Positions 25,746 to 42,599 of a stretch of 64,000 nt of DNA are shown piece after piece. The translations under genes were made by a program, and so were the position numbers. The notes below the pieces were generated by a model. It had not been told where the DNA came from. It searched no databases and saw only the letters and a list, made by a program, of their open reading frames with translations. Origin of the DNA: Zygnema circumcarinatum SAG 698-1b (taxonomy: Eukaryota > Plantae > Zygnematophyceae); assembly GCA_037447605.1 (NCBI GenBank), contig CM074813.1, forward strand, positions 1,364,001 through 1,428,000. The letters run 5' to 3'. Each line of letters opens with the position of its first letter. The stretch's first letter is position 1.

Positions 25746-25960
25746 CCCTTTACATTACATCTTGTGTCTCCCATCGAAAAAACTATGGGCACGTATCACT
25801 TCGAATTGTACACAACACTTTTAGTACTTTTGCATTCTATCCAAACAAAATAAAAAGCACATTGGAGTCTTCCCCTTAAAAAGACAGTCATTTCACGATT
25901 ATGAAACTACCATGCGGATAAATAAGTTCTTGGTCCTAAATTTAGCTGAATACATTCCTA
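25746..25960 (+). repeat. Left copy of a ~215-bp direct repeat flanking the 5S rDNA block
   Basis: Aligns to 42383-42599 with about 8 substitutions and one 2-bp indel. The last ~100 bp are identical. Confidence 0.92.
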
Positions 25961-25989
25961 CCCTTCATAAGTTTTTTTCCACCGGATAG

Positions 25990-27220
25990 CACCATTGGCA
26001 ATAGTTGTTTAGGGCTGGCGGCAATGGTTGGCAACGTTGAAAACCGTGGCCCATCATTGCAACCACTGCATTCCAAGGTCGCCAACCATTGCGACGGGAC
26101 AAAAACAAACAACGATTGCCAATGGTTGCAACCATACCATTGCCTGCGGTACGGTTGCCACCATTGGCAATGGTTTTTCGATTGGCAACCATTGCCGCCG
26201 GCCCTTCAATTCCAAGGTTGCCAACCATTGGCGATCGTTGTTTAGGGCCGGCGGCAATGGTTGGCAACATGGAAACCCATTGCCAATGGTTGCAACCATT
26301 GAATTCCGAGGTTGCCAACCATTGCGACGGGACCGAAACAACCATTGCCACTGGTTCCAACCATTGCCGCCGGTCCTAAACAACCATTGCCGAAAGGAGG
26401 CGTCCGATGTCTTCCCTCGAAAGGAGAAAAGAAAACAGAAAAAACGAACAAGGTCTGACACTTGCACGTCCGTACACGTGGTGCGATCATACCTAGGCTA
26501 CTACGCCGGATCCCATCAGAACTCCGCAGCTAAGCGCCTGTGGGCCGGAATAGTACTGGGATGGGTGACCTCCCGGGAAGTCCCGGTGTCGCACCCACAC
26601 CTTTTACTCTTTTCTTTCATTTTTGGAAATGGTCAAACATCAACATCGATGGTGTGACCAATCATGTTGGACATTGTTCTTGACCTGTTCTTGGCTGACG
26701 TCACAAGGTGACGCCTTGGCGGACTGCTTGTCTCTCGGCAAGCCGGTCCGAAACAGCAATTGCCAAATGGTTGGAACCATCGCCGCCCGGACCGACACAA
26801 CCATTGCCTACGGTTGCAACCATTGGCAATGGTTGGTTTTCAATGTTGCCAACCATTGCCGCCCGCCGGCCCTTGAATTCCAAGATTGCCAACCATTGGC
26901 AATAGTTGTTTAGGGCTGGCGGCAATGGTTGGCAACGTTGAAAACCGTGGCCCATCATTGCAACCACTGCATTCCAAGGTCGCCAACCATTGCGACGGGA
27001 CAAAAACAAACAACGATTGCCAATGGTTCCAACCATACCATTGCCTGCGGTACGGTTGCAACCATTTGGCAATGGTTTTGGATTGGCAACCATTGCCGCC
27101 GGCCCTTCAATTCCAAGGTTGCCAACCATTGGCGATCGTTGTTTAGGGCCGGCGGCAATGGTTGGCAACATGGAAACCCATTGCCAATGGTTGCAACCAT
27201 TGAATTCCGAGGTTGCCAAC
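25990..27220 (+). repeat. 5S rDNA tandem array, left segment (partial spacer, 5S gene, most of the next spacer), cut by the Copia LTR at 27221
   Basis: Same spacer sequence as the 903-bp units at 39108-42030. Confidence 0.9.
26478..26597 (+). rRNA. rrn5: 5S rRNA gene, copy 1
   Basis: GTGGTGCGATCATACC...GGATCCCATCAGAACTCCGCAGCTAAGCG...TAGTACTGGGATGGGTGACCTCCCGGGAAGTCCCGGTGTCGCACCC, 120 nt, followed by oligo-T Pol III terminators. Confidence 0.95.
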
Positions 27221-27942
27221 TGTCAGAGTTAGTTCCCCCTTCGGATGTGCCCTCACTCACAGCGGAAGACATTACAGACTGAGAGAACACACAAGGGAAA
27301 CACGCTGAAAAATATGGAGAAAGCTCTCAGGCCTAAAACTCCATTAAATAAAAGGCAGGATGATTACATAGAGTATATTCAGCACTAAGCCTAGCACTAC
27401 TCTTTAAACACCCCCCCCCCTTCTCTCGGTTCAACACACAGTCTCTAAACAGCCTACACAAGGCCTGTCAGACACTGTAAACTACAGAGGGTAATTCTAA
27501 GCTAAGCACTAAGCACTATAAATGCCTAAGCACTGAAGGGAGCCGCAGCTCCTCATTCGGCCGCACTCCCACCGCTCCAATAAGCCTCCATGTCTGCCGC
27601 GCCTTGCTCGCTTCGACGCCCGCCCTGGCTCCCGCCCTGGATCCCGCCCTGGCTCCCGCCCTGGCCACCGTATTGTGCTAGCTGGCTGCCCGGCAGGCCA
27701 TGTCCTCCGCCCAATGAGCCTGGGAGCTCGCCATTCCTGCGCTGCCTCCTTGCAATTCCTGTAACCCTAATTGCCAAGTGACGGCCCCCGATTGGCTGCC
27801 CCTTCGGCCCAGCCAACCGGTGGTATACCGCACCACCCGCCATACAATAAGCGTTCAGTACTATTGTCCGTACATCCGTACAGTTCGTATACTTCGTCCA
27901 AATCCCACAACTCTCAGCTGTACGGCTATCCGTACGCTGACA
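27221..27942 (-). mobile_element. 3' LTR (722 bp) of a Ty1/Copia retrotransposon
   Basis: Termini TGTCAG...CTGACA. PPT (AAGAGGGGGA on the minus strand) at 27944-27953 lies directly inside. Contains four copies of the 12-mer CCCGCCCTGG(C/A)T at 27619-27665. Confidence 0.85.
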
Positions 27943-27968
27943 ATCCCCCTCTTGGGATTTGATGCTGA

Positions 27969-28400
27969 TCAGAGAGGGCCAATCCCGACCAAGCGGCAGT
28001 TGGTCCATAGAATCTCACCGGTGACTGCTTTGGTTAACATGTCGGCAGCTTGCTCCAAAGTGCCGACAAAATGTACGGACACCCGCCTGGCCTCCACCTG
28101 TTCACGGACGTAATGATATTGGATCTTGATGTGCTTGGATCGTTTGTGAAAGACAGGGTTCTCCACCAGCGCAATCGAAGATTTGTTGTCGGTTCGCAGC
28201 TTGATTTGATTCTGCGGCCTCCTGCATTCTTCGAAAAAGTTCTGTAACCAAATCGCCTCCTTGGTGGCGTGGCAGGCTGCGATATATTCAGCCTCTGTAC
28301 TTGACAGCGCCACCGTATCTTGTAGTTTTGAGCTCCAGGTCAAAGATCCGCCGCAGTTAATGAACACGTATCCTGATGTTGATTTTGACGTATCAGGATC
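27969..28400 (-). mobile_element. Copia RNase H region (end of pol), reading frame intact
   Basis: DPDTSKSTSGYVFINCGGSLTWSSKLQDTVALSSTEAEYIAA...IKLRTDNKSSIALVENPVFHKRSKHIKIQYHYVRE...AADMLTK is canonical Ty1/Copia RNase HI. Confidence 0.93.
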
Positions 28401-41697: not shown

Positions 41698-41817
41698 GTG
41701 GTGCGATCAGACCTAGGCTACTACGCCGGATCCCATCAGAACTCCGCAGCTAAGCGCCTGTGGGCCGGAATAGTACTGGGATGGGTGACCTCCCGGGAAG
41801 TGCCGGTGTCGCACCCA
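41698..41817 (+). rRNA. rrn5: 5S rRNA gene, variant terminal copy (2 substitutions)
   Basis: As above, but T>G at 41710 (GATCAGACC) and C>G at 41802 (AAGTGCCGG). Confidence 0.88.
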
Positions 41818-42030
41818 CACCTTTTTTACTCTTTTCTTTCATTTTTGGAAATGGTCAAACATCAACATCGATGGTGTGACCAATCATGTTGGACATTGTT
41901 CTTGACCTGTTCTTGGCTGACGTCACAAGGTGACGCCTTGGCGGACTGCTTGTCTCTCGGCAAGCCGGTCCGAAACAGCAATTGCCAAATGGTTGGAACC
42001 ATCGCCGCCCGGACCGACACAACCATTGCC

Positions 42031-42214
42031 ATCGGACCGAAACAACCATTGCCATCGGACCGAAACAACCATTGCCATCGGACCGAAACAACCATTGCCA
42101 TCGGACCGAAACAACCATTGCCATCGGACCGAAACAACCATTGCCATCGGACCGAAACAACCATTGCCATCGGACCGAAACAACCATTGCCATCGGACCG
42201 AAACAACCATTGCC
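42031..42214 (+). repeat. Perfect minisatellite, 8 x ATCGGACCGAAACAACCATTGCC (23 bp)
   Basis: Eight identical head-to-tail copies, derived from a 5S spacer motif. Confidence 0.95.
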
Positions 42215-42342
42215 TACGGTGGCAACCATTGGCAATGGTTGGTTTTCAATGTTGCCAACCATTGCCGCCCGCCAGCCCTAAACAACTATTGCCAATGGTG
42301 GGCAATCTTGGAATTCAAGGGCCGGCGGGCGGCAATGGTTGG

Positions 42343-42384
42343 CACCGGGACTTCCCGGGCGGTCACCCATCCCAGTACTATTCC
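42343..42384 (-). pseudogene. Inverted 42-nt 5S rRNA fragment at the array end
   Basis: Reverse complement GGAATAGTACTGGGATGGGTGACCGCCCGGGAAGTCCCGGTG matches the 3' half of the local 5S with 1 mismatch. Confidence 0.9.
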
Positions 42385-42599
42385 CTTTACATTTTATCTT
42401 GTGTCTCCCATCGACAAAACTGTGGGCACGTATCACTTCGAATGGTACACATAACACTTTTAGTACTTTTGCATTCTATCCAAACAAAATAATGCGCACA
42501 TTGGAGTCTTCCCCTTAAAAAGACAGTCATTTCACGATTATGAAACTACCATGCGGATAAATAAGTTCTTGGTCCTAAATTTAGCTGAATACATTCCTA
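42383..42599 (+). repeat. Right copy of the ~215-bp direct repeat flanking the 5S block
   Basis: Aligns to 25746-25960. Confidence 0.92.

Follow-up and report, generated by a model that had tools for sequence, protein, structure and literature searches.

Genes and mobile DNA at the locus

The DNA analyzed here, referred to as the window, is a 64-kb stretch from Zygnema, a green alga related to land plants. Within it, a block of 5S rDNA sits between a gene encoding an ENTH-domain (MTV1-like) protein on one side and a tRNA-Lys gene and the gene for the small subunit of DNA primase on the other. The spliced genes of the flanks were searched exon by exon. For the long exon of the ENTH-like gene, a word search of a protein collection returned a Sphagnum protein as the sole match (28% identity). 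A single-exon sterol methyltransferase gene was also observed, which assigns the DNA to the Zygnematophyceae but no more narrowly; its best match (84%) is in an assembled read set, and its closest named matches are from Closterium (76%) and Mesotaenium (72%). The tRNA-Lys (CTT) gene occupies 42711 to 42784 on the minus strand, an orientation that is head-on to any replication fork moving rightward. It starts 46 bp past the end of the right copy of the direct repeat described below, and its T-run terminator (at approximately 42681 to 42690) is reached before that repeat begins.

Four complete 5S genes, all on the plus strand, were found in the block (starting at 26479, 39892, 40796, and 41699), with Rfam scores of 95.8 to 101 bits against a gathering threshold of 38. 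The units that carry them are arranged head-to-tail with a spacing of 901 to 904 bp, and in-phase units are 99.2 to 99.6% identical to one another. The array falls into two plus-strand parts. The left part (25991 to 27214) consists of a partial unit (unit positions 417 to 904), a 5S gene (26479 to 26597), and the continuation of its unit to position ∼744. The right part (39084 to 42273) starts at unit position 94 and carries the remaining three genes (39892 to 40010, 40796 to 40914, and 41699 to 41817); its last unit contains a 23-bp minisatellite of 8.9 copies (42010 to 42214). The spacer is rich in hairpins, with ∼14 copies per unit of the motif CAACCATTG(C/G)C in both orientations.

Between these two parts, a 5S unit is interrupted by the decayed remains of nested LTR retroelements on the minus strand (27215 to 38983), a segment that opens with TG at 27215. 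When stop-to-stop pieces of this segment were compared with Pfam, a Ty3-type integrase SH3 domain (29470 to 29781) and a weak match to the copia-type RVT_2 domain (36166 to 36396) were detected; among 47 start-codon open reading frames of the inner block, 1 had a Pfam match. A further minus-strand piece at 27972 to 28424, recognized by eye, is presumably RNase H-like and of copia type. We considered the segments at 28.4 to 29.1 kb and 34.9 to 35.5 kb as the LTR pair of one element and rejected this assignment: they align patchily (78% identity, with many indels) and look like different members of a family. The retroelement segment ends at an assembly gap (38984 to 39083). The DNA to the left of the gap is retroelement-like and has no 5S homology, whereas the DNA to its right begins partway through a 5S gene (unit position 94). 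Because of this mismatch, the sequence is discontinuous across the gap, and more than 100 bp are missing.

The flanking direct repeat

The original prediction for this DNA was that the whole 5S block is enclosed by a direct repeat of ∼215 bp and ∼96% identity, representing the duplicated target of an insertion. The repeat is real (25746 to 25960 versus 42383 to 42599; 95.4% identity over 217 alignment columns; blastn E = 8 × 10−97), and it does bracket the block, with each inner end falling precisely where the 5S DNA stops. Although it is present at both ends as proposed, it is longer than 215 bp. Gapped local alignment extends the left copy to 249 bp (25746 to 25994) and the right copy to 283 bp (42383 to 42665), both on the plus strand, giving a duplicated intergenic target of ∼250 to 283 bp. 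Over this full length, 235 of 248 aligned bases are identical, with indels of 2, 33, and 1 bp; the 33 bp lie at 42603 to 42635 in the right copy and are missing from the left copy. The additional match of 31 nt at the distal end cannot be attributed to chance, because its score was reached in 0 of 20,000 shuffles. The two copies, the only ones in the window, are ∼94 to 95% identical and differ at 16 sites, including the 33-bp indel.

The differences between the copies had been thought to be confined to the first ∼115 bp. Within the 215 bp this is correct, the last difference there being at 25856, but differences resume from 25961 on. What remains is a 104-bp core without differences (25857 to 25960), with diverged DNA to either side. 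Partial gene conversion, which had been proposed from the apparent confinement of the differences, is a weak claim, with P = 0.002 to 0.03 (calculated post hoc) for the clean run of 104 bp. The core is not a known RNA, because an Rfam search of the right copy gave no match at E values up to 1. A metagenome scan with the conserved core of the repeat gave 0 matches.

No similarity to the 5S unit is present in either flank copy, and all matches to the unit lie within 25991 to 42384. Unequal crossing-over between short flanking repeats, which gives rise to "SRS + unit + SRS" arrangements (PMC8831618), was rejected, given that flank sequence is absent between the 5S units. A plain tandem segmental duplication was also rejected: the right copy is followed by the tRNA-Lys gene, whereas the left copy is followed by the 5S array. 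Target-site duplications made by transposases and integrases have a fixed length of a few to ∼20 bp, and a duplication of 249/283 bp is not of this short, fixed kind. As originally proposed, the copies are not LTRs. They begin with CCCTTT and end with GCTCCA or GCACCA, with no TG start. The 5 bp immediately outside them differ (TGAAA on the left versus ATTCC on the right), and no target duplication of 4 to 6 bp is present. The left copy adjoins plain 5S spacer, from unit position 417 on, and the right copy adjoins an inverted fragment of a 5S gene; neither a primer binding site (PBS) nor a polypurine tract (PPT) is present at these inner edges. Recombination between the two copies, which would excise the array, is plausible.

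Junctions of the 5S block

At the left junction, homology between the left and right flank copies ends at 25994, and homology to the 5S unit starts at 25991 (which corresponds to 39404). The flank copy and unit positions 417 to 420 consequently have an A followed by CCA in common on the plus strand (25991 to 25994), of which the 3-base CCA (25992 to 25994, unit positions 418 to 420) constitutes the junction microhomology. This same CCA is the 3-nt tip loop of a hairpin of ∼100 nt that is present in every 904-bp unit. In the example at 40256 to 40355 on the plus strand, corresponding to unit positions 365 to 464, the tip reads ATTGCCAA-CCA-TTGGCAAT, and the hairpin is the strongest of the unit (minimum free energy, −39.9 kcal/mol; z = −8.2). 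Because only three perfect-stem tips occur per 904-bp unit, we estimate post hoc that the left junction would land on such a tip by chance in ∼1 to 2% of cases.

At the right end, the forward units give way to two reverse-complemented pieces, the first from unit positions 441 to 371 and the second from 5S gene positions 110 to 69, after which the right flank copy begins. The first of these inverted pieces is a fold-back segment of 71 nt on the minus strand (42274 to 42344). From diagnostic bases, the switch from forward to reverse was placed at 42273/42274, within the ∼26-nt inverted-repeat arms of the same hairpin whose tip marks the left junction. The second piece is the inverted 5S gene fragment (42343 to 42384, minus strand; 41 of 42 positions identical), which is bounded by 2-bp microhomologies on both sides (CA at 42343 to 42344 and CC at 42383 to 42384) and ends at 42382 to 42384, where the right copy starts. 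These orphan pieces are 97 to 98% identical to the unit, with 5 mismatches and 1 indel in ∼170 bp. Orphan pieces cannot be homogenized, and the divergences across the locus (identities of ∼94 to 95% for the flanks, 97 to 98% for the orphans, and 99.2 to 99.6% for the units) fit one old event, in a comparison that was made post hoc and involves few sites.

Both circle integration and a microhomology-mediated template switch had been suggested as routes for the insertion. An integrated circle would leave a circularly permuted whole number of units, but the insert starts at unit position 417, and its forward part ends near position 393 and is followed by the two inverted pieces. This speaks against circle integration. 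The microhomologies of 2 to 3 bp and the fold-back fit the template-switch route better.

Possible origins of the block

In our best explanation, the two copies are the insertion-site duplication of an event that placed 5S rDNA here, most likely by replicative template switching; we regard this explanation as about evenly balanced between right and wrong. That there was one insertion with duplication of its target, by whatever mechanism, is probable. A replicative route of the MMBIR/FoSTeS type (microhomology-mediated break-induced replication/fork stalling and template switching) specifically is a serious candidate that falls somewhat short of probable. The sequence of steps that we infer would constitute a single replicative event beginning with a fork stalled at the tRNA gene, on the assumption that replication ran from left to right. 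A nascent strand copying the interval in this direction would stop at 42665, 46 bp short of the head-on tRNA-Lys gene, and its CCA end would anneal to the CCA loop at the tip of a donor 5S unit's hairpin (unit positions 418 to 420). The strand would then copy 5S units forward, fold back inside the same hairpin, and copy 71 nt of the other strand (unit positions 441 to 371). From there, it may have jumped at CA to position 110 of the 5S gene, copied 42 nt, and used CC to rejoin the original template at a point 283 bp behind the one it had left. These 283 bp would be copied again after the return and would therefore be duplicated; the recipient stretch between re-entry and departure (42383 to 42665) is found a second time at 25746 to 25994. 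Later, the array would have been homogenized and perhaps expanded, LTR retroelements would have landed in it, and the flank copies would have drifted apart by ∼5 to 6%. No donor 5S locus was found in the 64-kb window.

Alternatively, the insert could have been captured at a break. A staggered double-strand break, with nicks ∼283 nt apart, would have been filled in, and a free piece of 5S DNA would have been ligated into it by microhomology-assisted end joining. Such a piece could have been linear, with a break at the hairpin tip, or could have come from an extrachromosomal circle that had opened; in either case, the fold-back would already have been present at one end. Capture of this kind would produce the same end anatomy as template switching, including junctions with microhomologies of 2 to 3 bp. 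Hairpin-opening nucleases cut at hairpin tips, and the left end of the insert is exactly at such a tip. In addition, extrachromosomal circles are known to arise from plant 5S arrays (Cohen et al. 2008, as cited in PMC10946416). However, staggers in end joining are not usually as long as 283 nt, and the insert, with its start at 417, its forward end near 393, and its two inverted pieces, does not correspond to a circularly permuted whole number of units. A run of three short templated pieces at one end is also more characteristic of serial template switching. We consider capture at a break rather unlikely.

The copies could instead belong to a dispersed repeat family, such as a nonautonomous element or a tRNA-associated retroposon with a 5′-truncated left copy, and could flank the array by coincidence or through recombination between preexisting copies. 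When the copies are read on the minus strand, one end is common to both (25746 and 42383), whereas at the opposite end the left copy falls short of the right one, as expected of a 5′-truncated retrocopy. In addition, a tRNA gene adjoins the right copy. Nevertheless, this tRNA gene has its own T-run terminator ahead of the repeat, the window contains two copies only, and the repeat has no Rfam match. It also has no terminal inverted repeats, TG..CA ends, A-rich tail, or short flanking duplication. Two independent insertions would furthermore have to lie flush with the two ends of the array, with single-base precision, and we judge a dispersed family to be improbable.

Because the repeat copies are on different contigs, their linkage and their 16.6-kb spacing rest on the scaffold. 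An artefact of scaffolding or assembly would mean that the contigs ending at 38983 and starting at 39084 are not neighbors, such that the copies flank different 5S clusters, or that the locus was misjoined. The gap at 38984 to 39083 does separate the copies, and the sequence across it is discontinuous, with at least a retroelement end and part of a 5S unit missing. Against this, each repeat/5S junction lies deep inside its contig, and the 5S units on either side of the gap have the same orientation and are 99.2 to 99.6% identical. The 16 differing sites, with the 33-bp indel among them, indicate that the copies are not a collapsed or doubled set of reads. Unlinked contigs would leave two paralogous flank copies, each fused to 5S DNA, and an event of the kind proposed here would be required all the same. 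We hold an artefact to be very improbable. Finally, a retroelement-like mobile unit with the copies as its LTRs, either Cassandra-like or a large LTR derivative with internal 5S genes, is extremely improbable: direct repeats of a few hundred base pairs enclose the block and LTR elements are present inside it, but the copies run from CC to CA rather than from TG to CA, their outer 5 bp differ, their inner edges are 5S spacer and inverted 5S fragment, and they are without 5S homology, whereas the LTRs of Cassandra themselves contain its 5S sequence.

The locus can be compared with several known systems. Events of the MMBIR/FoSTeS type in human copy-number variants and in yeast likewise have several junctions with 2- to 3-bp microhomologies, an insert templated from elsewhere, short inverted pieces, and a duplication behind the point where copying resumes. 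The locus differs from them in that its cargo is a functional-looking tandem array of rRNA genes that persisted, was homogenized, and was colonized by retroelements, and in that an ancient event is reconstructed from a single locus. Fold-back (palindromic) duplications in yeast and mammals, which start at short inverted repeats or hairpins, similarly involve a strand switch within a preexisting inverted repeat, here with the other end of the insert at the hairpin tip; however, only 71 nt are inverted at this locus before the next jump, and no large palindrome is present. Insertions of filler DNA, organelle DNA, and T-DNA at repaired breaks in plants also join foreign or ectopic DNA by microhomology, and short scrambled pieces are often found at one of their ends, but they are usually accompanied by small target deletions rather than a target duplication, which is 283 bp here. 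The Cassandra TRIM also combines 5S-related DNA with direct repeats of a few hundred base pairs. In contrast to the 5S-free intergenic DNA repeated here, the LTRs of Cassandra contain 5S sequence, and the element has both a PBS and a PPT, together with a target duplication of 5 bp; all of these features are absent from the locus. Re-integration of extrachromosomal circular 5S rDNA has been proposed as a route by which rDNA loci move (review, PMC10946416). It would account for 5S units reaching a new, nonhomologous site, but it predicts a permuted insert of whole units without a long target duplication, and neither fits here.

More speculatively, the locus may be the founding scar of a 5S cluster, formed when a fork stalled head-on at a tRNA gene restarted on the exposed tip of a spacer hairpin elsewhere in the genome and thereby copied 5S units into the new site. 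The hairpin-rich spacer would then make the 5S units of this alga intrinsically self-dispersing without a transposon. We put this forward tentatively and consider it doubtful in this extended form.

Clusters of 5S rDNA vary in number and chromosomal position among related species, and their movement is usually explained by transposons, ectopic recombination, or re-inserted circles, mostly from cytogenetic evidence (PMC10946416). At the Zygnema locus, the two junctions and the duplicated target are preserved, and the hairpin tip offers a structural explanation for the position of the break point, which makes a concrete mechanism testable. To our knowledge, there is little base-level evidence on how a 5S cluster arrives at a new site. 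If the insertion reading is true, the locus offers a rare view, at the level of single bases, of how gene clusters reach new places. Should the pattern not recur, it would be an ordinary, one-off repair scar; should it recur, it would demonstrate that a housekeeping family of tandem genes is able to spread by replication-repair errors driven by the structure of its own spacer.

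Duplicated flanks and neighboring genes

The original prediction described a direct repeat of about 215 bp bracketing a block of 5S rDNA and read it as a target duplication. By blastn, 25746-25960 and 42383-42599 aligned in direct orientation (95.4% over 217 columns; E 8e-97), and each flank had only two copies in the whole window, the sole other hit being 42 nt at the right-hand junction that match 5S genes in inverted orientation; this confirms that the repeat is real. Its true extent was longer: gapped local alignment paired 25746-25994 (left copy) with 42383-42665 (right copy), with 235 of 248 aligned bases identical and indels of 2, 33, and 1 bp. 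The match of the distal 31 nt beyond the 33-bp indel reached a score attained by 0 of 20,000 shuffles. The repeat had no similarity to the 5S unit, every unit match falling in 25991-42384. The claim that all differences fall in the first ~115 bp held inside the original 215 bp but not in the full alignment, where differences lay on either side of a 104-bp clean core. The chance of such a run, judged post hoc, was 0.002 with all 16 events independent, 0.03 when events in a cluster were counted once, and 0.02 for the original 215 bp. Gene conversion may possibly account for the core, the alternatives being constraint or chance; Rfam reported no RNA family within it. Excision of the array via recombination between the flank copies would be plausible, given repeats of 250 bp that are 95% identical.

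To the right of the array lie a tRNA-Lys (CTT) gene (42711-42784, minus strand; Rfam tRNA, ARAGORN identity) and a DNA primase small-subunit gene. The flanking spliced genes were searched exon by exon. The long exon of the left neighbor (plus strand) had an ENTH-domain protein from Sphagnum as its sole match (28% identity; E 9e-7), so that "MTV1-like" is a tentative label for a gene previously called MTV1. Elsewhere in the window, an apparently intron-less sterol C-methyltransferase gene (12668-13807, plus strand; 379 amino acids) had the full Pfam architecture, with a best match of 84% to an assembled read set and best named matches in Closterium (76%) and Mesotaenium (72%), which places the genome among the zygnematophycean algae. 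An 813-amino-acid open frame (56335-58776, plus strand) with a ubiquitin-like domain, PRP1_N, and HAT/TPR repeats encodes an ordinary-looking PRP6/STA1-type splicing factor. An assembly gap of 10 N lies at 60405-60414.

5S units and retroelement remains

Rfam placed four complete 5S genes on the plus strand, starting at 26479, 39892, 40796, and 41699, in units of 903 to 904 bp; units on either side of an internal assembly gap shared 99.2 to 99.6% identity. Position 1 of the unit was set at the first base of its 5S gene, with 39892-40795 as the reference unit. Edge units of arrays often carry substitutions. The last 5S gene (41699-41817) had two relative to the other three and scored 95.8 versus 101 bits (Rfam), in line with poorer homogenization at array edges. 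A 23-bp minisatellite (42010-42214; 8.9 copies, 99% matches) occurred in this last unit only, at the array edge. Each 5S spacer contained 1.9 copies of a 233-bp sub-repeat (39321-39777 and the same phase of every unit), giving every unit two related long hairpins. The 11-mer CAACCATTG(C/G)C, from which the spacer hairpins are built, was found 74 times in the window versus 0.09 expected, in both orientations and confined to the 5S spacers (25991-27214 and 39084-42341; ~14 per unit); it could be a candidate protein-binding motif.

At 27214/27215, one 5S unit is interrupted by 11.8 kb of degraded retroelement sequence, and no 5S unit matches were found inside 27215-38983. The predicted presence of retroelements inside the block was borne out by a Ty3-type integrase SH3 domain (29470-29781, minus strand; E 6e-21) and a weak match to copia-type RVT_2 (36166-36396, minus strand), in badly decayed elements. 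Related but patchy repeat segments occurred at three places. The retroelement block opens with TG directly inside the 5S unit, after ...GCCAAC, and Ty3-type integrase remains (29470-30700, minus strand) lie between copia-like pieces, one of them RNase H-type (27972-28424, minus strand); this arrangement resembles a copia-type element divided by a nested Ty3-type one. Between 27215 and the N-run at 38984-39083 there was no second LTR to match, so that this gap hides at least one LTR. GC-rich retroelement-like DNA lies to its left, and the sequence to its right begins at base 94 of the 5S gene. The sequence is discontinuous here, with one retroelement end and some of a unit missing at the least; the unit count is therefore a minimum. 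The flank copies are on different contigs, so that bracketing of the 5S block rests on scaffolding; the repeat/5S junctions themselves are both contig-internal and far from the gap.

Structure of the two junctions

At the left, the array begins at 25991 (unit position 417) and homology between the flank copies extends to 25994; the 5S and flank homologies overlap in CCA (25992-25994). A ~100-nt hairpin at positions 365-465 (DNA MFE, -39.9 kcal/mol; z-score, -8.2) is present in each unit, and 0 of 200 shuffles folded as stably. An 8-bp stem closed by a 3-nt loop, ATTGCCAA-CCA-TTGGCAAT, forms its tip, and the junction CCA is exactly this loop (25991 is equivalent to 39404). Since there are only three perfect-stem tips of this kind per 904-bp unit, a chance landing would be on the order of 1 to 2%, judged post hoc.

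At the right, the last unit runs forward up to 42273, retaining forward-arm markers (a T, and a 4-nt CCGC missing from the opposite arm). From 42274, it reads as unit positions 441 to 371 in reverse complement; this strand switch at 42273/42274 folds the sequence back within the very hairpin on which the left junction lies. The sequence then jumps at 42343-42344 (CA) to the 5S gene, positions 110-69 in reverse complement (41/42 identical), and enters the right copy at 42383-42384 (CC).

Origin and relative age

The two boundaries of the duplicated stretch are those of the 5S block to the base, which would not be expected of two separate events. The remaining reading is a single event, at one locus, in which 5S DNA arrived and 283 bp of the target became duplicated. 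Between the routes originally proposed, we favor replicative template switching in series, as in the MMBIR/FoSTeS family (PMC8831618), over circle integration, because each of the four switches falls at microhomology or short homology and two of the pieces copied are short inverted stretches. The copying strand would have left at 42665, 46 bp short of the tRNA gene's 3' end, and a rightward fork would collide head-on with this gene. Recognized replication barriers include tRNA genes (PMC8998199). In yeast, these barriers are polar. We infer a link between such a barrier and the departure at 42665. If a broken 5S fragment had been captured at a break with a long stagger, the product would be the same as from template switching; we consider this possible but less likely.

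A circular-DNA insert predicts a permuted whole number of units, which the insert does not fit. The initial cargo may have been one unit that was later amplified or several units copied together. Crossing-over between flanking short repeats is an amplification route (PMC8831618), but it predicts flank sequence between units, which is absent there. Plain tandem duplication was rejected, the right copy being adjoined by tRNA-Lys and not 5S DNA. Given the base-exact boundaries, it is improbable that a duplication arose first and an insertion then hit its joint exactly, or that two independent repeat insertions came to abut the array. LTR, TRIM, and transposase readings failed every defining feature that could be tested, upholding the view that the flank copies are not LTRs.

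Identity was about 94 to 95% between the flank copies, 97 to 98% between the unit and the orphan pieces at the right end (5 mismatches and 1 indel in ~170 bp), and 99.2 to 99.6% among in-phase units, including the leftmost up to its junction. The orphan pieces stand outside array homogenization. These identities, those of the orphan pieces coming from short stretches, are consistent with a single old event after which the array underwent concerted evolution. The class of mechanism is already known. A possibly new aspect is that it would here explain how a 5S rDNA cluster arrived, at a site where both junctions, the duplicated target, and a structural cause are all preserved.
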